Shown here piece after piece: positions 1 through 21,294 of a stretch of DNA of 21,720 nt. How positions within the stretch are numbered: position 1 is the first letter of the stretch; each line of letters starts with the position of its first letter. The stretch comes from Neoechinorhynchus agilis (taxonomy: Eukaryota; Animalia; Acanthocephala). The notes below the pieces were generated by a model that worked only from the letters and a program-made list of their open reading frames with translations, was not told where the DNA came from and made no database searches. The position numbers and the translations under genes are program-made. The DNA is taken from NCBI GenBank assembly GCA_051530055.1, contig JBMGUZ010000048.1, positions 1 through 21,720 on the forward strand, read 5' to 3'.

Positions 1-167
1 AATTATTCTCGAAAGTGAACTTATTCCTGTTTTGGTGCATTTTCTGCGAAAATTATTTGCTGCCGGCTGTGTTGAGCGATTAAAGAAAACGAATTTAGTC
101 TCCTACAAAATATTAGCGCAGCACAAAAACGTAAAAGTAGATTTTTCACGGAGATGAGAGTTCAAGA

Positions 168-238
168 GCATTGGTGGTTGAATGGTAGAATTCGTGATTG
201 CTACGCTAAAGACCCGGGTTCGGTATCCGTCCAATGCA
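168..238 (+). pseudogene. Degenerate tRNA-Gly(GCC)-derived sequence
   Basis: gcattggtggttgaatggtagaattc...gacccgggttcggtatccgtccaatgca aligns without gaps over 71 nt to the canonical metazoan tRNA-Gly-GCC (GCATTGGTGGTTCAGTGGTAGAATTC...GGCCCGGGTTCGATTCCCGGCCAATGCA, recalled from memory). The anticodon position reads GCT and the anticodon stem cannot pair. Confidence 0.8.
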
Positions 239-651
239 ACATTCGATCGATCTTAAATCTGTCGCCAGGAAACTTTACTTTTTCAATGGATTTTTTCGAC
301 TTTTAAACAACAAATGCGAAAAAATCTGGCCGCTTGGGCAATTATGAATCAGAACGAACAATGGACGCCAATATCTTACCTCTAATTTAATTTTCCTTCA
401 GAGATTTATATACTTTTTAGCATTGTGAATGCGTTTTTTAAATGAATGATTTGTAGTTTGTTTCCAATATTAAACTTTTCCCAGAGTTCTTGTGTTTTTT
501 AATAATACTTTTTTCGCATGAATCTAAACGCTGCGTACAATTTCCGAGTGGATACTAAAATAATTCGATATTTGAGAAATGCGCTTCGTTTTGATCGATT
601 TGTCTTTGAATTATTCTTTTGCTCGATTAGGTAGCAATGATGAGCGAAATA

Positions 652-657
652 TTTATT
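652..657 (-). terminator. Candidate AATAAA polyadenylation signal of FoxO-like copy A
   Basis: AATAAA on the minus strand ~80 nt after the stop codon, at the same position in all three copies. Confidence 0.5.
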
Positions 658-735
658 GTATGCTTAAAAGCCGAGTTTCGGTTTGTTTGAATGCGCTCTT
701 TTCGGTTGAGCATAACGATTGCCGTCCGATAACCT

Positions 736-3329
736 TTATCCAATTGGATTGAATTGATTGTTATTTTGTTGGTTAATGTTGTAGTTTTGGAGAGCGATCA
801 TCGCTTGCTCCTGCGAGATTAGAACTCCTGAGTTTAAGGCTTTTATTTCGCCGCATCTTTGACAAAGCGGCACAAGGAGAAACTGTGACATTTCGTGGGA
901 GTGATTCGGATCAACGCAAATATTGACGTGACAAACCATTTGACTAGCCTGATTGCTATTGTTGACTCGTTGATTGGTTTGAATACTTAATCCGTTTTGG
1001 AGAATCGCTGTATTGCCATATCTGAAATTTCCATCATTTCCTCCAATGTTAATGTTTTCGACGGGTGCGCTATTCTGCTGTGTTCCGAAATCAATGATCA
1101 GGTGGTTGTTCGCCAAGTCCAAATTTTTATTTGGAAAATATCCATTGGGTGCCATATTCCCAAAACCCAACTGTTCGTTTCGGTTTCCAATATTGGTACT
1201 GTTATTGTGGATTCCTTGGACTAAATTAGCTGCGTTCGCGTTTTCTACTCGATGGTTCTCCGCCAAGTTCAAATTTTGATTTGGAAAATATCCATTGGGC
1301 GCCATATTCCCAAAACCCAACTGTTCATTTCGGTTTCCAATATTGGTACTGTTATTATAGATTCCTTGGACTAAATAAGTTGCGTTCGAATTTTCTACTC
1401 GGGGGTTGTTCGCCAAGTTCAAATTTTGATTTGGAAAATATCCATTGGGTGCCATATTCCCAAAACCCAACTGTTCGTTTCGGTTTCCAACATTGGTACT
1501 GTTATTACAGATTCCTTGGACAAAATAGGCTGCGTTCGTGTTTTCTACTCGGTGGTTGTTCGCCAAGTTCAAATTTTGATTTGGAAAATATCCATTGGGC
1601 GCCATATTCCCAAAACCCAACTGTTCATTTCGATTTCCAATATTGGTACTGTTATTGTGGATTCCTTGGACTAAATTAGTTGCATTCGTATTTTCCACTC
1701 GGTGGTTGTTCGCCAAGTTCAAATTTTGATTTGGAAAATATCCATTGGGTGCCATATTCCCAAAACCCAACTGTTCATTTCCAATATTGGTACTGTTATT
1801 ATAGATTCCTTGGACTAAATTAGTTGCATTCGTATTTTCTACTCGGTGGTTGTTCGCCAAGTTCAAATTTTGATTTGGAAAATATCCATTGGGTGCCATA
1901 TCCCCAAAATCCAACTGTTCATTTCGATTTCCAATATTGGTACTGTTATTATAGATTCCTTGGACTAAATTAGCTGCGTTCGAATTTTCTACTCGGTGGT
2001 TGTTCGCGAAGTTCAAATTTTGATTTGGAAAATATCCATTGGGTGCCATATTCCCAAAACCCAACTGTTCGTTTCGGTTTCCAATATTGGTACTGTTATT
2101 GTAGATTCCTTGGACTAAATTAGTTGCATTCGTATTTTCTACTCGGTGGTTGTTCGCCAAGTTCAAATTTTGATTTGGAAAATATCCATTGGGTGCCATA
2201 TTCCCAAAACCCAACTGTTCGTTTCCAATATTGGTACTGTTATTGTGGATTCCTTGGACTAAATCAGCTGCGTTCGTATTTGCCACTCGGTGGTTGTTCG
2301 CCAAGTTCAAATTTTGATTTGGTAGATATCCATTGGGTGCCATATTCCCAAAACCCAACTGTTCATTTCGATTTCCAATATTGGTACTGTTATTATAGAT
2401 TCCTTGGACTAAATAAGTTGCATTCGTATTTTCCACTCGGTGGTTGTTCGCCAAGTCCAAATTTTGATTTGGAAAATATCCATTGGGTGCCATATTCGCA
2501 AAACCCAACTGTTCATTTCGATTTCCAATATTGGTACTGTTATTACAGATTCCTTGGACTAAATTAGCTGCGTTCGTATTTGCCACTCGGGGGTTGTTCG
2601 CCAAGTTCAAATTTTGATTTGGAAAATATCCATTGGGTGCCATATTCCCAAAACCCAACTGTTCGTTTCGATTTCCAATATTGGTACTGTTATTATAGAT
2701 TCCTTGGACAAAATAGGCTGCGTTCGTATTTTCCACCGTCCTGTTCATTTCATGGGGTGCTGCATGAACGAAATCTCTCGGTTCAAATGAGGACCGGGCC
2801 CGTTTGTTCCGATCATCGTTCATTGATCCAGGATTTGTACGTTTTCGGCCCGGTCTTTTGGGTTCTGGCTCCCTGTAATTCGGGTCAATGGTCCACCAAG
2901 ATCTTCTCGGATTATCGTCGTCCTCGATTTTAACGAATTTTTTGTTTATCGTAAGGCAATGTCGAATTGCGTTCTAAATACAATATCGGCGGCCATAAAA
3001 ATTTTAAGTTATGGGAAACTTACCTTCCAAGGCCTACTTTCGACGGGGCCCATTCGATAATTAAAATATAAATTGTTGTCCTCCAGCCATGAATAAATTT
3101 CACGTAGTTTCAGCCTCTTTTCGGGGCTGCTATAGATTGCTTTTGCGATCAAATCCGCGTAGGTGTACGGCCCCCACGCATTTATTCGTCGACCCTTTGC
3201 ACCAATAAGAATAATCGATTCTTCACTGGTTTCTGATGAATTTCCTTCGATCCGTTGATTTCTATTTCCTTGATACGATTCATCACCATCATCATGAGAA
3301 TGAGTAGAGCTTTTCCTGGAATCAGACAT
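736..3329 (-). CDS. foxO: Divergent FoxO-type forkhead transcription factor with 11 Asn-rich repeats, copy A; join(complement 3024-3329, 736-2973), 847 aa
   Basis: Exon 1 encodes RRINAWGPYTYADLIAKAIYSSPEKRLKLREIYSWL...YFNYRMGPVESRPWK. A GTAAGT...TATTTAG intron (2974-3023) follows. Exon 2 starts NAIRHCLTINKKFVKIEDDDNPRRSWWTIDP and runs in frame into ORF 736-2823. The 11-residue YF..WK spacing and the intron position are FoxO-typical. The symbol is family-level, not an orthology claim. Confidence 0.92.
1099..2736 (-). repeat. Coding tandem repeat, 11 units (nine of 150 nt, two of 144 nt)
   Basis: Unit ~VENTNATNLVQGIYNNSTNIGNRNEQLGFGNMAPNGYFPNQNLNLANNHR, counted from the translation. The two short units lack RN. 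Confidence 0.97.
2974..3023 (-). other. 50-nt phase-0 intron in forkhead domain, copy A
   Basis: GTAAGT donor and TATTTAG acceptor; removal restores the forkhead helix 3 sequence WK-NAIRH. Confidence 0.92.
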
Positions 3330-3488
3330 CTAAATTGGAAAAGTCAGATTAAAAATGAATTTAATTCATATTAATAAAGAAGGAATTCGACTTAAATGTT
3401 CTTCGAATTGATCGCTATAATCGACCGAAATCTTGGAGACGATTGAAAGATTCTATGTTCGAACTTTCTTGATTGAATGAGTGAATCG

Positions 3489-3496
3489 TATTTATA
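3489..3496 (-). promoter_or_regulatory. Candidate TATA box (TATAAATA), copy A
   Basis: Perfect TATAAATA ~165 nt upstream of the ATG, conserved in all three copies. Confidence 0.5.
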
Positions 3497-3836
3497 CTCC
3501 CCAATTCGAAAACATCAACTTTGTTTTTTTGATTGAACTTTGTACCTAAGCGAATTTGTTTTGGATGTCATCTCGTTTTGCTTTTCTATGATTTGTTGTT
3601 AAGAGCTTCGATTTTTAAAAATTAGATCACTGATATTCTTTATTGTATCTTATTTTTGGCATTTGGAGAGCATTGATGGCTTCTTTTCGGTATAATTCTA
3701 ATTTTATCATCTCTCAAATTAGTATTTTCCTAAACGGTCGACTTTGCTAAATTGAATGATCAATAAGTTATCATTAATTTTTGAGCCAGTTCTCATCAAC
3801 CTTCAAACTGGTAATCGCCTACCAACTTGTGGAATC

Positions 3837-5374
3837 TTTTTTTCTATTTTTTCTGGAGAATTTAATAATGAAATTAACTTTTATTACCAGAACCTGAATG
3901 TAACATACACGCTCACTTGAAGATATAAACATAATTATTCGCCGTCCTCGATTGTCGCCCGAATGCTCGCAATGTTGCCTCTCAACCCGGCGGTGCTGAT
4001 ATTTTATAACCAGGTTTTGACCTGACCTTGGATCGCCGGTCATAACCTGAAGGCGTCGCTTCACATCCTTCAGAAGTTGAGGAGCCTCGCAATCAAGAGA
4101 TCCGTAGGTACATTGGCTAAATCGAGGTATTTCGCCGTTTTCCGTCATTCCGCAGCGTTCGCTGCACCTCCAGCTTGAACCACCCAGAACTTTGGATTGC
4201 TGGTTGCGAGTGTATCGACACAGTGGCGTCCCAGAGGAGGCATTTACCCTCCTGCCATGGAACAGAGGTGGGCTGGTTCCAAAATATTGGGGTATTTGAG
4301 GCGTAACAAGTGCCCGGCTCAGCACCATGTTAATTTCAGAATGTCTTGCGAATCTACCGGCTGATTTTCAACAGATGAGACCATGGCATCCCGACGAATC
4401 CACATTTGCACCGCAGCGGCAACGGTGGGGGATGGCACATCGGTAGTCCCAGTCTCATTGAACTCCGGCCCGTTTTGCCTCGTGGGATAGTACCCTCGGA
4501 TGCCAGCGGGACCGTGGATTCTCTACTGGAGACTGCCAACAACCTGGCACGGGCAACGTCGTCGTTTGAGTCTGATAAGAGAGAGCTTTGAACACTTGCG
4601 GCGAGATGCCCACGCAGATTGTTTTTGGCGACCGGAGTTGGTCAGTGTACACCACTCACTGATTCCCTCTTCAAAATGCCTATCAAGACGATACGCATCT
4701 TTCAAAATGCGTTGAACTGCGCTTCCCCCATAGGAGCCTAAAGATGCGGGCAGGAATATGTCTGCTGTTTTCCGGATACCCAGCCCGCCAGAAGATACAG
4801 GCAAAGAAGCTTGTCGCCATGCCTCTTCTGACAGCTGGACATTTAAAACTTGCTCGAGACAGTCCTTCAATCTGTTATCTAGATTGCCACGCTGAACCTT
4901 GTGCTTGAAAAACGGCGAGGAACTTCAAGATGAAGAGGGTATCCTTTATCAAGGACAGAACCTCGTGTGATCCAAGCTCACAGACCTTATCGCAAAGCAC
5001 CGATAATTTCTTTAGAAGGCTGTTAATTTCGTTTTCTACATTCCCATCAAATGCGCAACTGCCCAAAAGCTTAAGCCGGTCTAAATCGACCATTTCTATC
5101 CCGACTTTCAAAGTCACGCATTATTACGCCTTTTGCAGGGTCCTTCTCTATATTACAGAATAGAATTTCGCATTTTTCTGTGTTCAATTCAAAATGCCCA
5201 GCTTCCTTGCCTCTATCAAGAACTACCTGGGGATCGCCTCCCAGCGCAGCATCGTCCACATAAAAGGCGTTGAATTCCGCATCAAGATAATGCGCAAATT
5301 CGTTCACTGTGAGCGCGAAACCAATGAGTATTTCTGTTGAACGCCGCTTTCGGATGGAATGATTTGATCGTTTA
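3837..5374 (-). mobile_element. Decayed 5'-truncated CRE-like non-LTR retrotransposon (RT + RLE remnant), copy A
   Basis: Mirror image of 10923-12459, with the same motifs and essentially the same stops and frameshifts. Confidence 0.85.
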
Positions 5375-6696
5375 CAAGAGAAGTTGCAGCTCCGTACGAA
5401 TTGAGTCCAGATGACAATAAGATTTAATTGTTATTTCTAAACCTGAAACAAACGTTTTTTGAGCAATGCTCTTAGTGTGAATAATTCATTCTTTTTTGAA
5501 AAGGTCCTAAGCGTTTAAGAGATTTTAAAATAAGTATCTTACGCCTCATGGAAACCTTGATAAACGCGTACAAGATTATGCCGAAATATCGGATTTTAAA
5601 ATAAAATTATTTTAATTTCTTCGCCAGAGACTACAAATAACGAGTGCGGAGTATCGGAGGTTAGGGAACGAGTTAAAACGACTAAAAATACCTCTGAAGG
5701 ATCTGTTTCGAAAAATAGACCCTTAAAACCGTCTGATGAAATCGAATTTAGTACCGAAGATCTCTTTTTTGTCGGACTAAAAGTATTATCGATAAAATAT
5801 ACGCCGTCGCCAACGATGCAGTGAATACGATAATATTTTATTGCAATGATTTGAAGAGAAATTTCAAGAAATGATGATCGAAACAATAATTTGGATGCAA
5901 TTTTTGAAAGCATTCAAAGGAAATCCGGATAACAAAATCGAACGAAGGAAGCGATAAATAATTTAAGAAGATCGAGGAGAAAACGAGCTGTTGTCATTAT
6001 GAGCAGCAATAGCCCTAAAATGTTAACATTGGAAGCAACAAATCAAAGAAAGGCATTGAATAAAACAGAAACGCAAAATGGCCTCTTAGAAAGATCATTT
6101 GATTTTTATTCCTTTAGCAAAAGCTAATGAGGAATCTTTGGTTGATGTTAGTGAGTTTTGATCGGCCTTCGCAACTTAATGACGATAAGACAAACCTAAA
6201 GTCCCAGGCTGAGAATTTCTGTTAGAAACATCACCAATGCCACTGGATTTTCTCGGCAATACAATCTTTCAGCTGTACCGATCACCGCATCTCCAAGACC
6301 TTTGTCCAGAGGTAAAACATTTTGGCTTACAAATACAAAAACAATAGAAAAATTAGTTGTGTTTTCATTAAAGGGAGTCAAATTAAACGGTTTTTGTTAC
6401 TCTGAAGTGTATTAGAGGCGTCAAGCGAGCAAACGGAACATTGATGAGCTTTTGATAAAGGAATTAACAATAACCGACCACTATAAAGGCGGTTCGGATT
6501 GATTCTTAGGTCTAAAACGATCCTCCAAGTAGCCTTAAGAGAAATTATTGACATTATTTTCCGAACGCCATGAAAGTGTAAAAGGATTCGGCAAGTAGCA
6601 AACTTGTACTTCGTGGACTCTTTTGTTGTTGTTTTTATTGCTCAATGAAATTGATTTCCACACACGACCACATCAAATTCGGATACACCCATATCG

Positions 6697-7656
6697 CTAA
6701 GACTCTTCATCCGGAATAACACTTTCGATTCTTAGTTTAACGTCTTTTGAAAGACTGGTTGGAAAATCAATTTGGAACTTAACTATGAGGTCTCCTCTCG
6801 AGTTTGGTGCTGTCGAACGGGGCATCCCGTCACCCTTTAGGATTTTGACAGTATTGGGACTAATGATTTCGTCTTCACTTATCGGGATACGTCTTTTCTT
6901 TGAGTCGATAGTAGAAACGACCACTTCGTTCAAGCATAGCGCCTGTAAGAGTGACAAACGAACACTATGAACCAAATCATCTCCAATCCTACTGAATGCT
7001 GGATCAGGTTCCTCGACTACAACGAACACCATATCCAACGGATCACCATACGAACTAATTAAATCACCTTCGCCAACGAATCTGATCTTCGTCCCAGCGC
7101 ACCAACCAGGTTTGATGTTTATGATGAAAATTTTAGGTTCAATCATAAAGGATCTTGATGATCGATCGTACACTTTCCTCTGAGCTACAATTCTCTTCGT
7201 GCCACCTTTTAAAAGTTCCTTTAAACTCAATTTCAATTCATGATACAAAGGTTCTTTTTGCCGAACCGTCTCTTGATCGGCTTTTGGATCACAATCTGTA
7301 TGCTGTGACCTTAGCCATTCAGTAATACGCTCAATTCCACAAAATCTCGACTCACTACTATCGCTAAAAAGGCTCAAATCGGCATCTAGTTTGTCAAAGA
7401 AACGCCTAAACGTCTTTCTTGGACTTACAATTGAATTGTAGCTGTAATTTCGTTCTCGATCATATGCCGATCGACGCGTTGGATCAATCAGAACTTCGTA
7501 GGCTTCAGCAAGCTGCTTGAACCTTTCTTCGGCATCGCCAGAATTACACTTGTCCGGATGATACTTCAGAGCCAAAGTTCGATATGCTCGTCTAATCTCG
7601 GCGTCCGTCGAATCAGACGATATCCCCAATATTTGGTAGTATCGCTTCCTAGTCAT
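6697..7656 (-). CDS. Class B DnaJ/Hsp40 co-chaperone (DNAJB1/4/5/13-like), intronless, 319 aa
   Basis: N-terminal J domain YYQILGISSDSTDAEIRRAYRTLALKYHPDK with intact HPD. No CxxCxGxG zinc finger. DnaJ C-terminal motifs present: LSLKELLKGGTK, IKPGWCAGTKIRFVGEGD, GDGMP...RGDLIVKFQIDFP. True ATG start. Confidence 0.93.
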   Translation of the reverse strand: MTRKRYYQILGISSDSTDAEIRRAYRTLALKYHPDKCNSGDAEERFKQLAEAYEVLIDPTRRSAYDRERNYSYNSIVSPRKTFRRFFDKLDADLSLFSDSSESRFCGIERITEWLRSQHTDCDPKADQETVRQKEPLYHELKLSLKELLKGGTKRIVAQRKVYDRSSRSFMIEPKIFIINIKPGWCAGTKIRFVGEGDLISSYGDPLDMVFVVVEEPDPAFSRIGDDLVHSVRLSLLQALCLNEVVVSTIDSKKRRIPISEDEIISPNTVKILKGDGMPRSTAPNSRGDLIVKFQIDFPTSLSKDVKLRIESVIPDEES

Positions 7657-7835
7657 TCAGTACGCGACGTTTTCAGGCTTCCGCAGCGTACGTCTCCGGC
7701 TTGATAGTATCGTCAGTGGGCAGGGGCGAGTTTGATGATGTGATATTAAAATCAGATTGACGTTGAATTGCGATTGAACGGTTCAATGTAAGAATGGCGT
7801 TAAAAAATCAATCGAAGAATGCCCTTTTTTGTGAG

Positions 7836-7843
7836 GTAAACAA
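7836..7843. promoter_or_regulatory. GTAAACAA (FoxO/DAF-16 binding element consensus) 180 nt upstream of the DnaJ ATG
   Basis: Exact match to the reverse complement of TTGTTTAC. It is a single site, so a chance occurrence is possible. Confidence 0.3.
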
Positions 7844-7915
7844 AAAGGTTTTTGTCCATGCAAACGTCTATGGAAACTGAGGACGAATGTATGCGTTTTA
7901 GGCTAGGATTTAGAA

Positions 7916-10766
7916 CTCGAGATACTCAAACAAAAATAAAATTTTATACGTTTTTGAGTATTTTTGAAGCGATCATCCAGTACACAGCTGATTTCCCGAA
8001 TTAATCGGTGAAGGACTAATTGAACTCGGGAGTTTTTTGACTGTGATTTTAAAAAGAAGACGGAATCTATATTTTAGACAAAACCTACGGATCCCATGTG
8101 CTCGAGATACTATAACAAAAATAAGATTTTATACGTTTTTGTGTATTTTTGAAGCGATCATCCAGTACACAGCTGATTTCCCGAATTAATCGGTGAAGGA
8201 CTAATTGAACTCGGGAGTTTTTTGACTGTGATTTTAAAAAGAAGACGGAATCTATATTTTAGACAAAACCTACGGATTCCTATTGCTCGAGATACTCAAA
8301 CAAAAATAAGATTTTATACGTTTTTGAGTATTTTTGAAGCGATCATCCAGTACACAGCTGATTTCCCGAATCAATCGGTGAAGGACTAATTGAACTCGGG
8401 AGTTTTTTTACTGTGATTTTAAAAAGAAGACGGAATCTATATTTTAGACAAAACCTACGGATCCCATGTGCTCGAGATACTGAAACAAAAATAAGATTTT
8501 ATACGTTTTTGAGTATTTTTGAAGGGATCATCCAGTACACAGCTGATTTCCCGAATTAATCGGTGAAGGACTAATTGAACTCGGGAGTTTTTTTGACTGT
8601 GATTTTAAAAAGAAGACGGAATCTATATTTTAGACAACACATTCTGATTCCTATTGCTCGAGATACTCAAACAAAAATAAGATTTTATACGTTTTTGAGT
8701 ATTTTTGAAGTGATCATCCAGTACACAGCTGATTTCCCGAATCAATCGGTGAAGGACTAATTGAACTCGGGAGTTTTTTTACTGTGATTTTAAAAAGAAG
8801 ACGGAATCTATATTTTAGACAAAACCTACGGATTCCATTGCTCGAGATACTGAAACAAAAATAAGATTTTATACGTTTTTGAGTGTTTTGATCATCCAGT
8901 ACACAGCTGATTTCCCGAATTAATCGGTGAAGGACTAATTGAACTCGGGAGTTTTTTTGACTGTGATTTTAAAAAGAAGACGGAATCTATATTTTAGACA
9001 ACACATTCTGATTCCTATTGCTCGAGATACTGAAACAAAAATAAGATTTTATACGTTTTTGAGTATTTTTGAAGCGATCATCCAGTACACAGCTGATTTC
9101 CCGAATCAATCGGTGAAGGACTAATTGAACTCGGGAGTTTTTTTGACTGTGATTTTAAAAAGAAGACGGAATCTATATTCTAGAAAAAACCTACGGATCC
9201 CATGTGCTCGAGATACTGAAACAAAAATAAGATTTTATACGTTTTTGAGTATTTTTGAAAGGATTATCCAGTACACAGCTGATTTCCCGAATTAATCGGT
9301 GAAGGACTAATTGAACTCGGGAGTTTTTTTGACTGTGATTTTAAAAAGAAGACGGAATCTATATTTTAGAAAAAACCTACGGATTCCATGTGCTCGAGAT
9401 ACTGAAACAAAAATAAGATTTTATACGTTTTTGAGTATTTTTGAAAGGATTATCCAGTACACAGCTGATTTCCCGAATTAATCGGTGAAGGACTAATTGA
9501 ACTCGGGAGTTTTTTTGACTGTGATTTTAAAAAGAAGACGGAATCTATATTTTAGACAACACATTCTGATTCCTATTGCTCGAGATACTCAAACAAAAAT
9601 AAGATTTTATACGTTTTTGAGTATTTTTGAAGCGATCATCCAGTACACAGCTGATTTCCCGAATTAATCGGTGAAGGACTAATTGAACTCGGGAGTTTTT
9701 TACTGTGATTTTAAAAAGAAGACGGAATCTATATTTTAGACAAAACCTACGGATTCCATTGCTCGAGATACTCAAACAAAAATAAGATTTTATACGTTTT
9801 TGAGTGTTCTTGAAGTGATCATCCAGTACACAGCTGATTTCCCGAATCAATCGGTGAAGGACTAATTGAACTCGGGAGTTTTTTTGACTGTGATTTTAAA
9901 AAGAAGACGGAATCTATATTTTAGACAAAACCTACGGATTCCTATTGCTCGAGATACTCAAACAAAAATAAGATTTTATACGTTTTTGAGTGTTCTTGAA
10001 GTGATCATCCAGTACACAGCTGATTTCCCGAATCAATCGGTGAAGGACTAATTGAACTCGGGAGTTTTTTTGACTGTGATTTTAAAAAGAAGACGGAATC
10101 TATATTTTAGACAAAACCTACGGATTCCTATTGCTCGAGATACTGAAACAAAAATAAGATTTTATACGTTTTTGAGTATTTTTGAAGCGATCATCCAGTA
10201 CACAGCTGATTTCCCGAATTAATCGGTGAAGGACTAATTGATCTCGGGAGTTTTTTTGACTGTGATTTTTAAAAGAAGACGGAATCTATATTTTAGACAA
10301 AACCTACGGATTCCATGTTTTCGAGATACTAAAACAAAAATAAGATTTTATACGTTTTTGTGTATTTTTGAAGCGATCATTCAGTACACAGCTGATTTCC
10401 CGAATTAATCGGTGAAGGACAAATTGAACTCGGGAGTTTTTTTGACTGTGATAAAAAAAGACGAAATCTATATTTGATACAAAACCTACGGATTCCATGT
10501 GCTCGAGATACTCAAACAAAAATAAAATTTTATACGTTTTTGAGTATTTTTTAAGTGATCATCCAGTACACGGCGGATTTCCCGAATTAATCGGTGAAGG
10601 ACTAATTGAACTCGGGAGTTTTTTCGACTGTGATTTTAAAAAGAAGACGGAATCAATATTCTAGAAAAAACCTACGGATCCCATGTGCTCGAGATACTGA
10701 AACAAAAATAAGATTTTATACGTTTTTGAGTATTTTTGAAAGGATTATCCAGTACACGGCGGATTT
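7916..10766. repeat. Tandem satellite array, ~15.4 monomers of ~185-186 bp
   Basis: The anchor ttgaactcggg (one copy reads ttgatctcggg) recurs at 8020, 8205, 8390, 8575, 8761, 8939, 9125, 9311, 9497, 9683, 9866, 10052, 10238, 10424 and 10606. Most monomers contain ctcgag and cagctg. There are no unique spacers. Confidence 0.97.
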
Positions 10767-10870
10767 TCCTTTGCTATTTATGAAGATACAGTAAAATATG
10801 TGATAAAGATGGGGCTTTTAAGATGAGCTTTAAAAAATCAGAATGCCAATGATGGTTCACGTCCGCACGT

Positions 10871-10907
10871 CTTCCACGAAATGTCACAGTTTCTCCTTGC
10901 GCCGTTT
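10871..10907 (+). other. Isolated 37-nt fragment of the FoxO-like 3' coding region
   Basis: cttccacgaaatgtcacagtttctccttgcgccgttt matches 14807-14843 at 35/37 positions. Confidence 0.85.
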
Positions 10908-10922
10908 AATATTAGAAACTAT

Positions 10923-12459
10923 TAAACGATCAAATCATTCCATCCGAAAGAGGCGTTCAACAGAAATACTCATTGGTTTCGCGCTCACAGTGAACGAATT
11001 TGCGCATTATCTTGATTCGGAATTCAACGCCTTTTATGTGGACGATGCTGCGCTGGGAGGCGATCCCCAGGTAGTTCTTGATAGAGGCAAGGAAGCTGGG
11101 CATTTTGAATTGAACACAGAAAAATGCGAAATTCTATTCTGTAATATAGAGAAGGACCCTGCAAAAGGCGTAATAATGCGTGACTTTGAAAGTCGGGATA
11201 GAAATGGTCGATTTAGACCGGCTTAAGCTTTTGGGCAGTTGCGCATTTGATGGGAATGTAGAAAACGAAATTAACAGCCTTCTAAAGAAATTATCGGTGC
11301 TTTGCGATAAGGTCTGTGAGCTTGGATCACACGAGGTTCTGTCCTTGATAAAGGATACCCTCTTCATCTTGAAGTTCCTCGCCGTTTTTCAAGCACAAGG
11401 TTCAGCGTGGCAATCTAGATAACAGATTGAAGGACTGTCTCGAGCAAGTTTTAAATGTCCAGCTGTCAGAAGAGGCATGGCGACAAGCTTCTTTGCCTGT
11501 ATCTTCTGGCGGGCTGGGTATCCGGAAAACAGCAGACATATTCCTGCCCGCATCTTTAGGCTCCTATGGGGGAAGCGCAGTTCAACGCATTTTGAAAGAT
11601 GCGTATCGTCTTGATAGGCATTTTGAAGAGGGAATCAGTGAGTGGTGTACACTGACCAACTCCGGTCGCCAAAAACAATCTGCGTGGGCATCTCGCCGCA
11701 AGTGTTCAAAGCTCTCTCTTATCAGACTCAAACGACGACGTTGCCCGTGCCAGGTTGTTGGCAGTCTCCAGTAGAGAATCCACGGTCCCGCTGGCATCCG
11801 AGGGTACTATCCCACGAGGCAAAACGGGCCGGAGTTCAATGAGACTGGGACTACCGATGTGTCATCCCCAGCGTTGCCGCTGCGGTGCAAATGTGGATTC
11901 GTCGGGATGCCATGGTCTCATCTGTTGAAAATCAGCCGGTAGATTCGCAAGACATTCTGAAATTAACATGGTGCTGAGCCGGGCACTTGTTACGCCTCAA
12001 ATACCCCAATATTTTGGAACCAGCCCACCTCTGTTCCATGGCAGGAGGGTAAATGCCTCCTCTGGGACGCCACTGTGTCGATACACTCGCAACCAGCAAT
12101 CCAAAGTTCTGGGTGGTTCAAGCTGGAGGTGCAGCGAACGCTGCGGAATGACGGAAAACGGCGAAATACCTCGATTTAGCCAATGTACCTACGGATCTCT
12201 TGATTGCGAGGCTCCTCAACTTCTGAAGGATGTGAAGCGACGCCTTCAGGTTATAACCGGCGATCCAAGGTCAGGTCAAAACCTGGTTATAAAATATCAG
12301 CACCGCCGGGTTGAGAGGCAACATTGCGAGCATTCGGGCGACAATCGAGGACGGCGAATAATTATGTTTATATCTTCAAGTGAGCGTGTATGTTACATTC
12401 AGGTTCTGGTAATAAAAGTTAATTTCATTATTAAATTCTCCAGAAAAAATAGAAAAAAA
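10923..12459 (+). mobile_element. Decayed 5'-truncated CRE-like non-LTR retrotransposon (RT + RLE remnant), copy B
   Basis: Motifs in order, across frameshifts: IPSERGVQQ, FYVDDAALGGD (RT YxDD), ELNTEKCEI, LKLLGS, QASLPVSSGGLGIR, the zinc-knuckle CGANVDSSGCHGLIC*KSAGRFARHSEIN, PWQEGKCLLWDAT (RLE endonuclease region), AANAAE*RKTAKY and RGNIASI. AATAAA and an A-rich tail follow. The clade is assigned from recalled motifs. Confidence 0.85.
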
Positions 12460-12799
12460 GATTCGACAAGTTGGTAGGCGATTACCAGTTTGAAGGTTGA
12501 TGAGAACTGGCTAAAAAATTAATGATAACTTATTGATCATTCAATTTAGCAAAGTCGACCGTTTAGGAAAATACTAATTTGAGAGATGATAAAATTAGAA
12601 TTATACCGAAAAGAAGCCATCAATGCTCGCCAAATGCCAAAAATAAGATACAATAAAGAATATCAGTGATCTAATTTTTAAAAATCGAAGCTCTTAACAA
12701 CAAATCATAGAAAAGCAAAACGAGATGACATCCAAAACAAATTCGCTTAGGTACAAAGTTCAATCAAAAAAACAAAGTTGATGTTTTCGAATTGGGGAG

Positions 12800-12807
12800 T
12801 ATAAATA
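12800..12807 (+). promoter_or_regulatory. Candidate TATA box (TATAAATA), copy B
   Basis: Conserved position upstream of the ATG in all three copies. Confidence 0.5.
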
Positions 12808-12966
12808 CGATTCACTCATTCAATCAAGAAAGTTCGAACATAGAATCTTTCAATCGTCTCCAAGATTTCGGTCGATTATAGCGATCAATTCGAAGAACAT
12901 TTAAGTCGAATTCCTTCTTTATTAATATGAATTAAATTCATTTTTAATCTGACTTTTCCAATTTAG

Positions 12967-14972
12967 ATGTCTGATTCCAGGAAAAGCTCTACTCATTCTC
13001 ATGATGATGGTGATGAATCGTATCAAGGAAATAGAAATCAACGGATCGAAGGAAATTCATCAGAAACCAGTGAAGAATCGATTATTCTTATTGGTGCAAA
13101 GGGTCGACGAATAAATGCGTGGGGGCCGTACACCTACGCGGATTTGATCGCAAAAGCAATCCAAAGCAGCCCCGAAAAGAGGCTGAAACTACGTGAAATT
13201 TATTCATGGCTGGAGGACAACAATTTATATTTTAATTATCGAATGGGCCCCGTCGAAAGTAGGCCTTGGAAGGTAAGTTTCCCATAACTTAAAATTTTTA
13301 TGGCCGCCGATATTGTATTTAGAACGCAATTCGACATTGCCTTACGATAAACAAAAAATTCGTTAAAATCGAGGACGACGATAATCCGAGAAGATCTTGG
13401 TGGACCATTGACCCGAATTACAGGGAGCCAGAACCCAAAAGACCGGGCCGAAAACGTACAAATCCTGGATCAATGAACGATGATCGGAACAAACGGGCCC
13501 GGTCCTCATTTGAACCGAGAGATTTCGTTCATGCAGCACCCCATGAAATGAACAGGACGGTGGAAAATTCGAACGCAGCTAATTTAGTCCAAGGAATCTG
13601 TAATAACAGTACCAATATTGGAAATCGAAATGAACAGTTGGGTTTTGGGAATATGGCACCCAATGGATATTTTCCAAATCAAACTTTGAACTTGGCGAAC
13701 AACCACCGAGTGGAAAATACGAATGCAACTAATTTAGTCCAAGGAATCCACAATAACAGTACCAATATTGGAAATCGAAACGAACAGTTGGGTTTTTGGA
13801 ATATGGCACCCAATGGATATTTTCCAAATCAAAATTTGAACTTGGCGAACAACCACCGAGTAGAAAACACGAACGCAGCCTATTTTGTCCAAGGAATCTG
13901 TAATAACAGTACCAATATTGGAAATCGAAATGAACAGTTGGGTTTTGGGAATATGGCACCCAATGGATATTTTCCAAATCAAAATTTGAACTTGGCGGAG
14001 AACCATCGAGTAGAAAACGCGAACGCAGCTAATTTAGTCCAAGGAATCCACAATAACAGTACCAATATTGGAAATCGAAATGAACAGTTGGGTTTTGGGA
14101 ATATGGCACCCAATGGATATTTTCCAAATCAAACTTTGAACTTGGCGAACAACCACCGAGTGGAAAATACGAATGCAACTAATTTAGTCCAAGGAATCCA
14201 CAATAACAGTACCAATATTGGAAATCGAAACGAACAGTTGGGTTTTGGGAATATGGCACCCAATGGATATCTACCAAATCAAAATTTGAACTTGGCGAAC
14301 AACCACCGAGTGGCAAATACGAACGCAGCTGATTTAGTCCAAGGAATCTACAATAACAGTACCAATATTGGAAATCGAAATGAACAGTTGGGTTTTGGGA
14401 ATATGGCACCCAATGGATATTTTCCAAATCAAAATTTGGACTTGGCGGAGAACCACCGAGTGGCAAATACGAACGCAACTTATTTAGTCCAAGGAATCGA
14501 CAATAACAGTACCAATATTGGAAATCGAAACGAACAGTTGGGGTTTGGGAATATGGCACCCAATGGATATTTTCCAAATCAAAATTTGAACTTGGCGAAC
14601 AACCACCGGATCATTGATTTCGGAACACAGCAGAATAGCGCACCCGTCGAAAACATTAACATTGGAGGAAATGATGGAAATTTCAGATATGGCAATACAG
14701 CGATTCTCCAAAACGGATTAAGTATTCAAGCTAATCAACGAGTCAACAATAGCAATCAGGCTAGTCAAATGGTTTGTCACGTCAATATTTGCGTTGATCC
14801 GAATCACTCCCACGAAATGTCACAGTTTCTCCTTGTGCCGTTTTGTCAAAGATGCGGCGAAATAAAAGCCTTAAACTCAGGAGTTCTAATCTCGCAGGAG
14901 CAAGCGATGATCGCTCTCCAAAACTACAACATTAACCAACAAAATAACAATCAATTCAATCCAATTGGATAA
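12967..14972 (+). CDS. foxO: Divergent FoxO-type forkhead transcription factor with 7 Asn-rich repeats, copy B; join(12967-13272, 13323-14972), 651 aa
   Basis: Exon 1 ends RPWK at 13272. The intron 13273-13322 runs GTAAGT...TATTTAG. Exon 2 begins aac gca att cga cat (NAIRH) and reaches the ATG at 13473 after exactly 50 codons with no stop. Confidence 0.92.
13273..13322 (+). other. 50-nt phase-0 intron in forkhead domain, copy B
   Basis: Canonical donor and acceptor; splicing restores the forkhead domain. Confidence 0.92.
13560..14609 (+). repeat. Coding tandem repeat, 7 units of 150 nt
   Basis: Seven 50-aa units counted in the translation. Confidence 0.97.
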
Positions 14973-15050
14973 AGGTTATCGGACGGCAATCGTTATGCTC
15001 AACCGAAAAGAGCGCATTCAAACAAACCGAAACTCAGCTTTTAAGCATAC

Positions 15051-15056
15051 AATAAA
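15051..15056 (+). terminator. Candidate AATAAA polyadenylation signal, copy B
   Basis: ~80 nt after the stop, conserved across copies. Confidence 0.5.
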
Positions 15057-15469
15057 TATTTCGTTCATCATTGCAACCCAATCGAGCAAAACAATAATTC
15101 AAAAACAAATCGATCAAAACGAAGAGCATTTCTCAAATATCGAATTATTTTAGTATCCACTCGGAAATTGTACGCAGCGTTTAGATTCATGCGAAAAAAG
15201 TATTATTAAAAAACACAAGAACTCTGGGAAAAGTTTAATATTGGAAACAAACTACAAATCATTCATTTAAAAAACGCATTCACAATGCTAAAAAGTATAT
15301 AAATCTCTGAAGGAAAATTAAATTAGAGGTAAGATATTAGCGTCCATTGTTCGTTCTGATTCATAATTGTTCAAGCGGCCAGATTTTTTCGCATTTGTTG
15401 TTTAAAAGTCGAAAAAATCCATTGAAAAAGTAAAGTTTCCTGGCGACAGATTTAAGATCGATCGAATGT

Positions 15470-15540
15470 TGCATTGGACGGATACCGAACCCGGGTCTTT
15501 AGCGTAGCAATCACGAATTCTACCATTCAACCACCAATGC
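15470..15540 (-). pseudogene. Degenerate tRNA-Gly(GCC)-derived sequence (mirror copy)
   Basis: Reverse complement of 168-238. Confidence 0.8.
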
Positions 15541-15773
15541 TCTTGAACTCTCATCTCCGTGAAAAATCTACTTTTACGTTTTTGTGCTGCGCTAATATTT
15601 TGTAGGAGACTAAATTCGTTTTCTTTAATCGCTCAACACAGCCGGCAGCAAATAATTTTCGCAGAAAATGCACCAAAACAGGAATAAGTTCACTTTCGAG
15701 AATAATTGGGATTAGAGCAACCGTTTACTTACAAATCTCTTTAGAAATCATTCTCATAAGATTATTTCTCAAA

Positions 15774-17396
15774 TTACAATCTAATCTTTTTGTTTTTCTC
15801 TTTATCATTCTCCAAAGCTTCACGATGACGCTTTCTATTAGTCGCGTTCAATTCATTTGTACGTTCAGGATTCTCAGCAATCCGCTGCTCTGCTCCTTCT
15901 TCATTGCCGTTAAGGATTTCGACGACGGTTTCTCCGCGCTCCACATTCCCGAAAAGAGACGAATATGCCGATTGCAACTGAGTTGGATTCGAACTCGTTG
16001 ACTGCAATGGAATCCCCTCCGATGCCATGATGGGCATCAATGTTTTTTCGACAAAATCAATAGCTTTTTTAAGCGTAATGGCTCTCAGCGGTCGTCCACG
16101 TTGAAATTCTTTTACGATAACAATCGATTTGTAAAACATTCTTCGGTCTTTACCTGATAAAAATATCTTGAGAAGATATTTTACGACGGATAAAAACTTA
16201 CAATGAGCATGTTGCTTCCGAACTTCTCTTAAGAAAATCTTTATCGTTGGAATCATAGAACCCAATTCCTGCTCAGCCTGTGCTCTGCTCATTCCCAGAA
16301 TTTCTATAAGAGCGTTAAACCGGATTTTTTGTCCTAAAATCTTACCTTCTTCATTCAAAATATTATTTGGTTGAAGAGTTGGTTCCATGTAGACCGGATC
16401 TTGAGATTGATTAAATGCAGCGTTTGAATTTGTAAATCTTATCGCCGATTCTTGGAGATGATTACGGCCATATTCGGAAAAGTTTGATTCAACTTTTAGC
16501 GGTTGGGAAATTTCGGGATTAAAAAACTGTGTTTGTTGCTCGACATTTCTTTGAGTGTCAAATACACCCACAGGATGGAGTTGTTGCCGTTGACCGGTGA
16601 AATCAATCGGCTGATCACTGTACATCGACATATTTGATTGATTGAGTGGTCGAGACTGATTAGGTGCGTAATCCACTTCATATTGATTCAATTGATGGAT
16701 CGGATGCTGTTGACTAATTGGGTTATAGCGATTCGGCTGTCTTGCTTGATATAATCGCTGACTTTGGAGCGTTGGATTTAGTATTCTCGGTGATTGCCAG
16801 ACTTGGTCCGATCTTTGAGGTTGATTTGGCGGAAATGTCGGCTCAAATTGAGTGCATTGGCCGATCTGTTGGGTTTGATTGTAAAAGAACGAACTTTCAT
16901 ATTGATTTGATTGGTCGATCGAATGCTGTTGATTCGTTGTGTGATAGTTTTGCATGCCATGTTCGTTTCGTTGGCATTCGAACATTGGGCCTTGCTGTTC
17001 AAATTGATTAAATTGACCAATTGATTGGTCTGATTGTGTAGCGTTCGGCTGCATTTGGTTACTTAATTGTTGGTGTGGTTCATAGTAGTCGGTCGTTGTA
17101 TGTCTCATTTCTGGTCCAGTTGCTCTTCGATTCGCCCATAAATACCTCGACTGATTTACCATTTCATTTAATAAATCCAACACTGATTTATAGTACTGAG
17201 AGAGATTGCGAGATTGGGTATATAAATCCTCTTCGGTACACTTCAGGGATTCGCCGTGTGGACTTTTACACAGCTCCATAATATTTTGTCTATAATAAAA
17301 CCGATCGGCATTGTGAAGATATCGCGATAAAAGACTACTTACATCGTTTTGGTAACATAAAGACGATTCTCGTAAGCTATTTCCATTTGAATTCAC
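15774..17396 (-). CDS. Uncharacterised Gln/Asn-rich protein, up to 540 aa; start uncertain
   Basis: A 1.6-kb open frame in AT-rich DNA, with a Q-rich middle and a basic C-terminus (RKRHR...KEKNKKIRL). The listed start is GTG; the first in-frame ATG is at 17279 (501 aa), so an upstream exon is possible. I recognise no family. Confidence 0.75.
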   Translation of the reverse strand: MNSNGNSLRESSLCYQNDVSSLLSRYLHNADRFYYRQNIMELCKSPHGESLKCTEEDLYTQSRNLSQYYKSVLDLLNEMVNQSRYLWANRRATGPEMRHTTTDYYEPHQQLSNQMQPNATQSDQSIGQFNQFEQQGPMFECQRNEHGMQNYHTTNQQHSIDQSNQYESSFFYNQTQQIGQCTQFEPTFPPNQPQRSDQVWQSPRILNPTLQSQRLYQARQPNRYNPISQQHPIHQLNQYEVDYAPNQSRPLNQSNMSMYSDQPIDFTGQRQQLHPVGVFDTQRNVEQQTQFFNPEISQPLKVESNFSEYGRNHLQESAIRFTNSNAAFNQSQDPVYMEPTLQPNNILNEEGKILGQKIRFNALIEILGMSRAQAEQELGSMIPTIKIFLREVRKQHAHCKFLSVVKYLLKIFLSGKDRRMFYKSIVIVKEFQRGRPLRAITLKKAIDFVEKTLMPIMASEGIPLQSTSSNPTQLQSAYSSLFGNVERGETVVEILNGNEEGAEQRIAENPERTNELNATNRKRHREALENDKEKNKKIRL

Positions 17397-18609
17397 TTTG
17401 TAGATCGTTGAGTTGTAAGCGATGATTTTTGTAAAAACATTGAATATTTCCTATTCTTACCATTCCGATAGAACCACAAATATTGGCAATTACATAATTA
17501 TTGTTGCCATCTTTGTTTAAATTTAAAACAAATAACAAGGAAGCAAGTCTTTATATTTGCGTATTTTTATTTGTGCATAAATTCCTTTATTTACTCATTG
17601 AAACATTTGGAGATCAATGCTTTAAACATTCTTGCACAAACAAACGCTATATTTTTTGGATGTACTGCTCCAAATACTGAGCTTGATTTTTTTATCAAAT
17701 GAATCAAGATAACGTTTATGGATTTTATGTTGCAATATCACTGATGAAGTGCGAATCGACTAGGATTTTAGATGTATTGAAAATGAGTTCTTGGAGTAAA
17801 AACAATTTCGTGACAGTTGAGTTGAAGAATTTCAGATGAATTTCTCTTATTTACTTAGGTCAAGAAAGTTAAAGGAAAGTAAAAAGGAAGCGAATGCTGC
17901 CACAAATTGTCAACCAACGAAGTATTTTCCTTTGTTGCCACAACTAATTTTTTACTTTTCGTCTCATTCAAATGGTCTTTGAAAGTATCGTGAATTTATG
18001 TCTAAACTTTATTGTCAATAGAAAAACGTAGAAATCAATTCTTTAGATTAAAAACGCTCTCATTTTATTTCACTAGGAATATAACGATCAACCTTAGAAG
18101 TCTCCGAATAAGTTTATCTGCTTTTAAAAAGGGTTGAAAAATGAAATTCGCCAATAATTTCAATCAGTCGGGAGTTTCTGGGAAATGCGGCAAATAATTC
18201 CCTACCAAGACTTATTCACAAAAATCTTAAATGGCAAAAAACAATTTAATTCTGTATTAAATCCAATTAATCTTTTCAAATTATAGTTTCATAAAAAAAT
18301 CAAAATTCAAAAAAAAATATTATCAATGGTTTAGGTGTCCAACATTGCAGCTGGATTTAATCATCGCTTCGGAAATATGCCGATGATAACCAGAAATGTC
18401 TTAAAAAAACGAGCAATTTCAAATCGCATTTGCGAGAAAAAAAAAGAATCAATCCCCCTAAACAATGAAATTTTCCCACGTTTCTTAAACTGGTTTTTAT
18501 ATCTTTATCGGGCCTAATAAAATTACTTCAATTTTATGCCAATATAAAAACATGAATAATTCAATCTTGAAACAAGGTAAAGATTAAGGCGACTTGGAGA
18601 AGGGTAAAA

Positions 18610-19115
18610 AATAATGTCTATATAGCAGAATTTTTTTTTATTATCTCATTGTAAAAGGGTTTTATCTTCTCCTATAGATATTTTTTAATAAAACATCGAA
18701 GAGATTGCAACATTTATAAATCTTAAATATTGATAAATCCGATTTTTTTTCGGTTGAACGCAAAGCTGCAAAATTCTTAAATTCCAATAATTAATTTTTA
18801 CAAATAAAAAAGCACCCGAAAAATCTGCCGGTAAATCGAATTGATTACAAAATTAATCTTTATAATTTCGATACGAACTTTAGAAATAAAAAACTCGTTG
18901 CACATTCACATCAGCATACTTTAAATTCTTTAAATTAAAAAATAATGTCTAAGTAACTGAAATCTTTTCTAATATCTCATTGAAAAAGGGGTTTATCTTC
19001 TTTTATAGAAATTTTTTAATAAAACATCGAAGAGATTGCAACATTTATAAATCTTAAACATCAATAAATCCGATTTTTTAGGTTGAACGCAAAGTAGAAA
19101 AATTCTAAAATTTCA
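18610..19115. repeat. Diverged direct repeat pair (~175 bp; 18610-18786 and 18941-19115)
   Basis: Shared blocks include aataatgtct, tatctcattg, ttttttaataaaacatcgaagagattgcaacatttataaatcttaaa and ggttgaacgcaaag. Confidence 0.8.
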
Positions 19116-19727
19116 AACCGGACTAAAAAAAGTCGAACTGCAAGAAGTTTCGCAAGACGCAACGAATAACCAAGAGTTTTTGAAGAACACGTAAATACAG
19201 CTGATCCTAATCAGGTGCCCGTAGAGCCCGGACGGTAGCCGAACTCGCGAGAACCACAGAAATTTTGTTGAGCAACAGTTCAAGAATTCTGATGTGCGGA
19301 TTGACCGAGCCGTTAGTGATTCGAGTGGGCAACTGGCTAAGCTAATTCACTTGTTCATCATGTACCAAAGAGTCCGGTATTGCCGCGATTGGTAAACCAA
19401 TAAAAAAAGTGCTCAAAAGGTTGATGAGAACTGGCTAAAAAATTAATTAATGATAACTTATTGATCATTCAATTTAGTAAAGTCGACCGTTTAGGAAAAT
19501 ACTAATTTGAGAGATGATAAAATTAGAATTATACCGCAAAGAAGATATCAATGCTCTCCAAATGCCAAAAATAAGATACAATAAAGAATATCAGTGATCA
19601 AATTTTTAAAAATCGAAGCTCTTAACAACAAATCATAGAAAAGCAAAACGAGATGACATCCAAAACAAATTCGCTTAGGTACAAAGTTCAATCAAAAAAA
19701 CAAAGTTGATGTTTTCGAATTGGGGAG

Positions 19728-19735
19728 TATAAATA
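19728..19735 (+). promoter_or_regulatory. Candidate TATA box (TATAAATA), copy C
   Basis: Same position as in copies A and B. Confidence 0.5.
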
Positions 19736-19894
19736 CGATTCACTCATTCAATCAAGAAAGTTCGAACATAGAATCTTTCAATCGTCTCCAAGATTTCGGT
19801 CGAATATAGCGATCAATTCGATGGACATTTAAGTCGAATTCCTTCTTTATTAATATGAATTAAATTCATTTTTAATCTGACTTTTCCAATTTAG

Positions 19895-21294
19895 ATGTCT
19901 GATTCCAGGAAAAGCTCTACTCATTCTCATGATGATGGTGATGAATCGTATCAAGGAAATAGAAATCAACGGATCGAAGGAAATTCATCAGAAACCAGTG
20001 AAGAATCGATTATTCTTATTGGTGCAAAGGGCCGACGAATAAATGCGTGGGGGCCGTACACCTACGCGGATTTGATCGCAAAAGCAATCTATAGCAGCCC
20101 CGAAAAGAGGCTGAAACTACGTGAAATTTATTCATGGCTGGAGGACAACAATTTATATTTTAATTTTCGAATGGGCCCCGTCGAAAGTAGGCCTTGGAAG
20201 GTAAGTTTCCCATAACTTAAAATTTTTACGGCCGCCGATATTGTATTTAGAACGCAATTCGACATTGCCTTACGATAAACAAAAAATTCGTTAAAATCGA
20301 GGACGACGATAATCCGAGAAGATCTTGGTGGACCATTGACCCGAATTACAGGGAGCCAGAACCCAAAAGACCGGGCCGAAAACGTACAAATCCTGGATCA
20401 ATGAACGATGATCGGAACAAACGGGCCCGGTCCTCATTTGAACCGAGAGATTTCGTTCATGCAGCACCCCATGAAATGAACAGGACGGTGGAAAATACGA
20501 ACGCAGCCTATTTTGTCCAAGGAATCTGTAATAACAGTACCAATATTGGAAATCGAAATGAACAGTTGGGTTTTGGGAATATGGCACCCAATGGATATTT
20601 TCCAAATCAAAATTTGAACTTGGCGAACAACCACCGAGTAGAAAACACGAACGCAGCTGCTTTAGTCCAAGGAATCTACAATAACAGTACCAATATTGGA
20701 AATCGAAATGAACAGTTGGGTTTTGGGAATATGGCGCCCAATGGATATTTTCCAAATCAAAATTTGGACTTGGCGAACAACCACCGAGTAGAAAACGCGA
20801 ACGCAACTAATTTAGTCCAAGGAATCTACAATAACAGTACCAATGTTGGAAACGAACAGTTGGGTTTTGGGAATATGGCACCCAATGGATATTTTCCAAA
20901 TCAAAATTTGAACTTGGCGAACAACCACCGGATCATTGATTTCGGAACACAGCAGAATAGCGCACCCGTCGAAAACATTAACATTGGAGGAAATGATGGA
21001 AATTTCAGATATGGCAATACAGCGATTCTCCAAAACGGATTAAGTATTCAAACCAATCAACGAGTCAACAATAGCAATCAGGCTAGTCAAATGGTTTGTC
21101 ACGTCAATATTTGCGTTGATCCGAATCACTCCCACGAAATGTCACAGTTTCTCCTTGTGCCGCTTTGTCAAAGATGCGGCGAAATAAAAGCCTTAAACTC
21201 AGGAGTTCTAATCTCGCAGGAGCAAGCGATGGTCGCTCTCCAAAACTACAACATTAACCAACAAAATAACAATCAATTCAATCCAATTGGATAA
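19895..21294 (+). CDS. foxO: Divergent FoxO-type forkhead transcription factor with 3 Asn-rich repeats, copy C; join(19895-20200, 20251-21294), 449 aa
   Basis: Same exon/intron structure as A and B, intron 20201-20250; exon 2 is in frame with ORF 20401-21294. Confidence 0.92.
20201..20250 (+). other. 50-nt phase-0 intron in forkhead domain, copy C
   Basis: gtaagt...gtatttag. Confidence 0.92.
20488..20931 (+). repeat. Coding tandem repeat, 3 units (150, 150, 144 nt)
   Basis: Counted from the translation; the last unit lacks RN. Confidence 0.97.

Follow-up and report, generated by a model that had tools for sequence, protein, structure and literature searches.

The DNA analysed here, referred to as the window, is the entire unplaced contig JBMGUZ010000048.1 (21,720 bp) of the Neoechinorhynchus agilis (Acanthocephala) assembly GCA_051530055.1. 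It carries two copies of a FoxO-like gene in the arms of an inverted repeat, a DnaJ gene and a satellite between the arms, and a further copy of the FoxO-like gene beyond them. The assembly is a hybrid of Oxford Nanopore Technologies (ONT) and Illumina reads from 50 pooled worms, built with MaSuRCA/Flye, from which haplotigs were removed by purge_dups. A small HiFi dataset and the Hi-C data come from single females. The assembly measures 46.2 Mb, and 94% of its sequence lies in three scaffolds. For comparison with the chromosome, 42.9 kb of scaffold CM121341.1 was used, consisting of three fetched loci joined together; there were 0 N gaps in any fetched locus.

An initial annotation, made from the letters of the window alone, had described a gene-bearing palindrome with two arms of about 5 kb around a 5.5-kb spacer. 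The inverted repeat is indeed present in that position (Table 1), and its extent is far above chance expectation. The arms measure 5,374 and 4,785 bp, and are made up of about 550 bp of sequence downstream of the gene, a FoxO-like cassette of about 2 kb, a dead reverse-transcriptase fragment and a further ~300 bp. Through BLAST, the arms were found to be 97.8% identical over 3.7 kb with the tandem repeat included. Without the repeat, the identity rises to 99.4%, with mismatches at 10/2,637 inner and 13/1,099 outer positions, and just 3 mismatches fall in the innermost 947 bp. In all, the arms are separated by 23 substitutions and a difference of 4 repeat units. Two inverted arms of high identity, a unique spacer and sharp boundaries make this a gene-bearing palindrome, though it is smaller and less uniform than the large sex-chromosome type, in which the arms exceed 8 kb and 99% identity.

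Table 1. Positions of the features discussed in the text. Coordinates are those of the window, except for the two control kinase loci, where they are internal to each locus.
Feature	Position	Strand	Remarks
Left palindrome arm	1..5374		base 1 is the exact outer boundary of the arm
Right palindrome arm	10923..15707		unique right flank begins beyond the outer boundary at 15707
Asymmetric spacer	5375..10922		5,548 bp; first 314 bp (5375-5688) are former arm sequence, kept on the left side only
FoxO-like gene, left copy	736..3329	-	exons 3329..3024 and 2973..736; 847 aa; 11 repeat units; intact
FoxO-like gene, right copy	12967..14972	+	exons 12967-13272 and 13323-14972; 651 aa; 7 repeat units; intact
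Third, direct cassette copy	19417..21481	+	~2 kb; exons 19895-20200 and 20251-21294; 449 aa; 3 repeat units; intact
Coding tandem repeat, left	1101..2733	-	150-bp in-frame unit encoding 50 aa, N-rich; 11 copies
Coding tandem repeat, right	13560..14608	+	150-bp in-frame unit; 7 copies
Reverse-transcriptase (retroelement) fragment	3804..5400	-	decayed, frameshifted, 5'-truncated; upstream of left gene; GC ~0.5
Mirror copy of reverse-transcriptase fragment	10923..12492	+	in right arm; spurious reading frame at 11968-12477
DnaJ gene	6697..7656	-	single exon; J domain and DnaJ_C; 319 aa; unique to spacer
186-bp satellite	7916..10766		between DnaJ 5' end and right arm; 15.4 copies
Unique right flank	15708..18711		colinear with the chromosome copy, 98.9% identical
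540-aa Q/N-rich reading frame	15774-17396	-	no Pfam match; just outside palindrome
First control kinase locus, duplication	1-2001 / 19045-21044
Second control kinase locus, direct duplication	1-2311 / 8896-11209
Second control kinase locus, inverted duplication	4321-5569 / 13519-12272

As had been annotated, the two arm genes face outward; the left copy lies on the minus strand and the right copy on the plus strand, so that transcription of each runs away from the spacer. The repeat numbers reported for them also stand, with 11.0 and 7.0 copies of the 150-bp unit. Two amino-acid differences between the arms had been quoted in addition. Both are present, and AIYSS/AIQSS falls in the forkhead domain, but VMTGD/VITGD exists only in a spurious open reading frame (ORF) of 169 aa. 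The third copy of the gene, in direct orientation, is absent from the initial annotation. It diverges from the arms by 1.1-2.5%, depending on the segment and the arm, and sequence that is GC-rich and looks element-derived is found at both of its breakpoints. The spread of the cassette by 3' transduction of a retrotransposon was considered and rejected, as the 50-nt intron is kept in all copies and what lies upstream of the third copy is unlike the corresponding sequence of the arms.

In all three window copies the frames are open and the 50-nt intron is of the GT-AG kind. The encoded protein has a forkhead domain (PF00250 at 76.7 bits, with a cut-off of 27). When compared with the PDB, its 11 best matches were all FoxO-class forkhead domains at 70.7-85 bits, ten of them named FOXO1/3/4 or AFX, whereas other Fox classes did not exceed 58 bits. 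The domain is therefore nearest to FOXO1/3/4, and it shares with the FoxO / DAF-16 factors the RRxNAWG motif and the FoxO-specific loop insertion before helix 3, which is aligned without gaps. The remainder of the protein differs from these factors. No AKT/PKB consensus (RxRxxS/T) is recognisable, either at the N-terminus or after the forkhead domain; none is present in the N-terminal 40 residues, and in the alignment GRKRTNPGSM stands against RRRAASM of FOXO1. Neither the KIX-binding nor the transactivation (TAD) domain of FOXO was found, Forkhead being the sole Pfam family at E up to 0.1. The N. agilis protein adds, behind the forkhead domain, an N-rich repeat of 50 aa and, after it, a conserved Cys/His-containing C-terminal module (C-[VI]-D-P-x-H, about 12 residues, C-Q-R-C). 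This module was seen in N. agilis alone when 1.84 billion representative proteins were scanned in full with HMMER. AlphaFold confidence is high across the forkhead domain only, and the C-terminal module could not be modelled usefully by AlphaFold2 from an alignment of four sequences (predicted local distance difference test score, pLDDT, ~30). The repeat protein has a borderline DUF7527 match, which falls within low-complexity sequence. Forkhead and FOXO go unmentioned in the genome paper.

Between the paralogues of chromosomes 1 and 2, the ratio of nonsynonymous to synonymous divergence (dN/dS) is 0.27 overall; for the forkhead domain alone it is 0.11, and for the C-terminal 75 residues 0.19. 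Among the repeat units, the corresponding pairwise ratio of differences (pN/pS) is 0.36. Purifying selection thus acts on this gene family, and the low dN/dS, together with the pN/pS of the repeat units, shows the genes to be functional. Antisense ORFs of 132-171 aa at 1281-1679, 2124-2567, 14179-14577 and 20291-20806 are a by-product of the stop-free periodic repeat.

The same architecture is found at 8.13 Mb of the 19.4-Mb scaffold CM121341.1, with unique sequence on both flanks. The order there is the unique left flank, arm A, the satellite, DnaJ, arm B, the right flank, 5.8 kb that is missing from the window, and the third copy. All four arms of the two versions stop at one outer nucleotide (...GAGAATAATT), corresponding to window base 1 and 15707. 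Beyond this edge, a unique left flank follows arm A, and one common right flank follows both arm B and the right arm of the window. As the arms share one end and are followed by unique flanks, the palindrome has its full length in these 15,707 bp. The size given earlier as 'at least 15.7 kb' is not open-ended; the chromosomal arm boundary fixes it exactly. The contig end at the arm edge is probably due to the assembler recognising the edge of a repeat. A mirror of the 15774-17396 ORF, which the initial annotation proposed to look for on the outer left side, is not there in the chromosome copy.

When the two versions are aligned, the right flank runs plus/plus (98.9-99.1%), whereas the arms and the spacer run plus/minus; the two versions therefore hold the spacer in opposite orientations with respect to the right flank. 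The arm next to the flank adjoins the satellite in the window and the 3' side of DnaJ in the scaffold. The unique spacer is identical at 2541/2541 positions, and the repeats differ in number. The arms hold 11 and 7 units in the window versus 4 and 5 in the scaffold, and the satellite has 15.4 copies versus about 8.4. The segment 5375-5688 is duplicated in the scaffold, and the right arm of the window is without these ~311-314 bp at its inner end. The arms formerly extended about 314 bp further inward, and the right arm of the window has lost this part. That the inversion of the spacer is a true polymorphism, and not an arbitrary choice of the assembly, has slightly better than an even chance.

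The third copy in the scaffold, within 10001-15300 of its fetched locus, contains a frameshifted 4.4-kb array of about 29 units, after which the C-terminal coding part is missing; in the window this copy is intact. The gene of scaffold arm B, ACOME3_001943, which spans about 14353-16056 of its fetched locus, has lost one base from the G5 run of exon 1 and is also frameshifted in the repeat, owing to either ONT error or early decay. Its annotation bridges the frameshifts by artificial introns, which cut out part of forkhead helix 1.

Comparison of the four arms gives signs of exchange between them. In the reverse-transcriptase-like part, the scaffold arms differ at 84/1388 positions (6.1%), as against 17/1224 (1.4%) elsewhere (Fisher p = 1.6e-10). 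In the same part the window arms differ at 5/1455 (0.3%), and scaffold arm B is the outlier among the four. In the inner segment, 11 sites (13 with the outer segment) group the arms by haplotype, while the other two partitions are supported by 3 and 4 inner-segment sites; 7/11 of the haplotype-grouping sites, however, lie within 40 nt and may be one event. The innermost informative sites (up to window 11871) group the arms by the adjoining spacer side, and those from 12255 outward by the adjoining flank, with one exception. The four-arm pattern, in which the counts are small, fits arm-to-arm gene conversion along with crossover between the arms. Signatures of the arm-to-arm conversion to which the initial annotation referred are thus present in the form of haplotype-grouping sites and uneven arm divergence, as seen in two haplotypes of one pooled assembly.

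Paralogues of the gene occupy the other two large scaffolds. On CM121342.1 (16.4 Mb), a FoxO-like paralogue of 349 aa, 51% identical, with dS ~0.8 and one repeat unit, is present in two inward-facing copies of identical coding sequence. These lie in a palindrome of about 45 kb (within 2,749,457-2,797,978) with arms of about 21 kb that are 99.1-99.9% identical, a 4.9-kb spacer carrying SURF2, and a unique left flank. Each arm holds a PKA-like kinase, a 542-aa gene, a leucine-rich repeat (LRR) gene and the FoxO-like paralogue. One mismatch was observed in 2.5 kb around the gene, versus 0.4-3% in the rest of the arms. The chromosome 1 and chromosome 2 palindromes are not paralogous blocks, as the latter is without a homologue of the 540-aa ORF or of DnaJ. 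On CM121343.1 (7.8 Mb), the paralogue has 339 aa and is 39% identical in the C-terminal module. Its 3.0-kb cassette pair is 97.8% identical, inverted and outward-facing, with the copies ~107 kb apart (~6.39 and 6.50 Mb; positions 9185-12216 and 9185-12191 of their respective fetched loci) and the mismatches concentrated at the cassette edges. The forkhead helix 3 encoded there (NSIRHNLSLH) is the most canonical in the family.

Could the arms be alike simply because the inverted duplication is young? The palindrome would then be real, with no ongoing conversion, and the divergent reverse-transcriptase stretch of arm B would be a later ectopic replacement. Along their whole length, three of the four arms keep an identity of 98.7-99.6%, and among the chromosome 1 copies dN/dS is ~1 with very few changes. 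Young duplications, both direct and inverted, are also common in the sampled loci. At two unrelated control kinase loci, young direct duplications (99.4-99.95%) and one inverted duplication (97.2%, 1.25 kb) were seen, and the assembly shows widespread local duplication of recent date, or else haplotypes left uncollapsed. Simple youth, however, does not explain why the arms group by haplotype and not by position at the 11 inner-segment sites, nor why divergence is low at the centre and higher at the edges in three independent pairs. Three deeply diverged paralogues (dS ~0.8) would each need a recent inverted duplication, and no donor for the divergent stretch of arm B was found among the fetched copies. 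This explanation is hence regarded as unlikely.

An assembly artefact has also to be weighed. Only a single true arm would exist in that case, and either two pooled haplotypes were joined head-to-head or the orientation of the spacer was set arbitrarily in a hairpin-shaped graph. The pooled DNA and the use of MaSuRCA/Flye and purge_dups speak for it, as does the left arm end, which coincides exactly with the contig end. Further support comes from the hairpin of contig JBMGUZ010000007.1, the Adineta vaga precedent and an arm divergence close to the allelic one, all taken up below. Such an artefact, however, requires that the same four junctions were built wrongly on two occasions, in a pair of contigs with four arm sequences and four repeat counts (11, 7, 4, 5). 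The 6.1% divergence of the scaffold arms over 1.4 kb is far above the allelic level of 1%. The third, direct copy stands beyond 3.7 kb of unique sequence, so the gene is truly multi-copy, and the chromosome 3 pair, with 3-kb arms ~107 kb apart, cannot be a misplaced haplotig. The asymmetric spacer with its unique gene and the absence of N gaps oppose an artefact as well. The combination of identical arms, no unique spacer and a contig-end position that marks a hairpin artefact is not found in the palindrome. A fold-back read, against which the initial annotation had argued, is likewise contradicted by the differing arms, by the 5.5-kb spacer with unique DnaJ, and by the second contig with the same structure and unique flanks. 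An artefact is thus considered improbable, and the palindrome is probably real.

The explanation preferred here is a small inverted segmental duplication on an ordinary N. agilis chromosome, whose two-copy gene unit evolves in concert, and it is considered probable. Intrachromosomal gene conversion would keep the arms alike, most strongly at the gene and its upstream region. A crossover between the inverted arms would flip the spacer, and the window and the scaffold would then represent its two orientations, the window being an unpurged alternative haplotype of the pooled sample. The number of 50-aa units, which is 11, 7 and 3 in the window and 4, 5 and ~29 in the scaffold, may change through unequal exchange or through slippage during replication.

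Several points tell against this explanation. Informative sites are scarce, and some lie so close together that they could represent single events. The divergent reverse-transcriptase part of arm B could stem from ectopic conversion by another copy of the element. The window and scaffold versions belong to one pooled assembly and hence are not independent read sets; the spacer identity of 2541/2541, despite a flank difference of 1%, could reflect shared polishing. The arm divergence of 0.3-1.2% resembles the allelic divergence of the flank. The same assembly contains a perfect hairpin of 12.47 kb, as the ends of the 83-kb unplaced contig JBMGUZ010000007.1 (1-12470 and 70708-83177) are inverted copies identical at 12,470/12,470 positions, and this terminal repeat is probably an assembly hairpin artefact. 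A precedent is also known from the bdelloid rotifer Adineta vaga, where palindromes of the first assembly were later ascribed to mis-scaffolded haplotypes (PMC8494291). The 2013 A. vaga case resembles the present one in concerning a related organism (Syndermata), a draft assembly and uncollapsed haplotypes. The palindromes there were scaffolding artefacts, whereas the N. agilis structure is gap-free, recurrent and has distinct arms with a 6% stretch.

The initial annotation had gone further and suggested that the locus may lie on a sex-limited, germline-restricted or B chromosome, or in another ampliconic region. On such a chromosome, conversion would replace meiotic recombination. Gene-bearing palindromes are typical of these chromosomes (PMC8327919), B chromosomes are reported, to judge by the title of PMC10592040, for one acanthocephalan species, and the window is an unplaced contig. 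However, a near-identical locus lies mid-arm in CM121341.1, the largest of the three scaffolds that hold 94% of the genome, and the Hi-C data that place this scaffold are from a female. Modern cytogenetics of three Acanthocephalus species has shown XX/X0, with no Y in males and hence no male-limited chromosome. The special-chromosome idea is not supported, because inverted FoxO-like pairs are found on the other two scaffolds as well, so that at most one can be on the X, and because young duplications also occur at the control loci. It is thus regarded as highly improbable. The palindrome very probably does not mark a special chromosome. The alternative of another ampliconic region is only loosely right, in the sense that the gene family is locally amplified.

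A wider proposal is that every member of the lineage-specific FoxO-like family is kept as an inverted pair homogenised by conversion, one for each of the three chromosomes, and that at the present locus both spacer orientations segregate while the proteins are hypervariable in length (3 to >11 fifty-residue units). This is offered tentatively and is rather doubtful. If true, one inverted pair per chromosome would imply selection for the palindromic arrangement itself.

In mammalian sex-chromosome palindromes, the orientation of the spacer can flip via recombination between the arms. The palindromes of primate and mouse sex chromosomes (human Y P1-P8; X, PMC8327919; bioRxiv 10.1101/800185) share with the N. 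agilis locus the inverted gene-bearing arms, the unique spacer and the signatures of conversion. The arms of N. agilis are only 4.8-5.4 kb long, though, while theirs range from >8 kb up to megabases. Further, the identity in N. agilis drops to 97.8% when the coding minisatellite is counted, and the locus occupies a large ordinary scaffold, each of the three scaffolds having a similar pair. Small inverted gene pairs that evolve in concert are known from Drosophila, as Hsp70Aa/Ab at 87A, and an inversion between 11-kb inverted repeats is known at human FLNA-EMD. These resemble the N. agilis palindrome in their kilobase arms, short spacer, coding and upstream sequence homogenised by conversion, and polymorphic spacer inversion. 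The differences are that the N. agilis gene is a lineage-specific FoxO-like factor with a length-variable coding repeat, and that a dead retroelement forms the inner arm. Small gene-bearing palindromes evolving in concert are therefore already known. What is noteworthy in N. agilis is the inverted pairs for every paralogue, the possible inversion polymorphism and the length-variable repeat.

The reverse-transcriptase remnant in the arms lies on the upstream side of the gene and shares its orientation. Its conceptual translation had no direct Pfam or PDB match, but a large protein search gave homologues at E 1e-25 to 1e-11, several of which carry PF00078. The 169-aa ORF within it (3819-4328; mirror 11968-12477), annotated as a hypothetical protein of 165 aa, was rejected as a gene; it has no match in Pfam and is a chance frame inside the decayed remnant. 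Diverged copies of the element (66-75% DNA identity) are found at the inner edge of the chromosome 2 palindrome (CM121342.1, ~2,774,750-2,776,500) and upstream of the third copy in the scaffold (CM121341.1, ~8,146,575-8,148,150). The element is repeatedly associated with FoxO-like cassettes.

The DnaJ protein of the spacer is encoded on exactly two records, JBMGUZ010000048.1 and CM121341.1, and is 100% identical between them. A single match to the FoxO binding consensus GTAAACAA lies at 7836-7843, on the upstream side of DnaJ and ~180 bp from its start codon; this frequency is not above chance. In the consensus of the 186-bp satellite unit, a short hairpin-like inverted repeat can be seen by eye. 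The 540-aa ORF of the right flank is 99.4% identical to its scaffold copy, for which the annotated length is 471 aa. Scanning the window for Rfam families and tRNAs gave no matches.

The locus calls for some caution in the use of this genome, since the palindromes of the pooled assembly include artefacts as well as real-looking ones, and not all gene models in the arms can be relied on. If the structure and both orientations are real, this would be a compact palindrome of autosomal type in a barely studied phylum, combining conversion, inversion and instability of a coding repeat. It would then be a handy natural system for asking whether selection maintains palindromes outside the sex chromosomes. 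The FoxO-like family, with its C-terminal module, is a candidate regulator in acanthocephalan biology.

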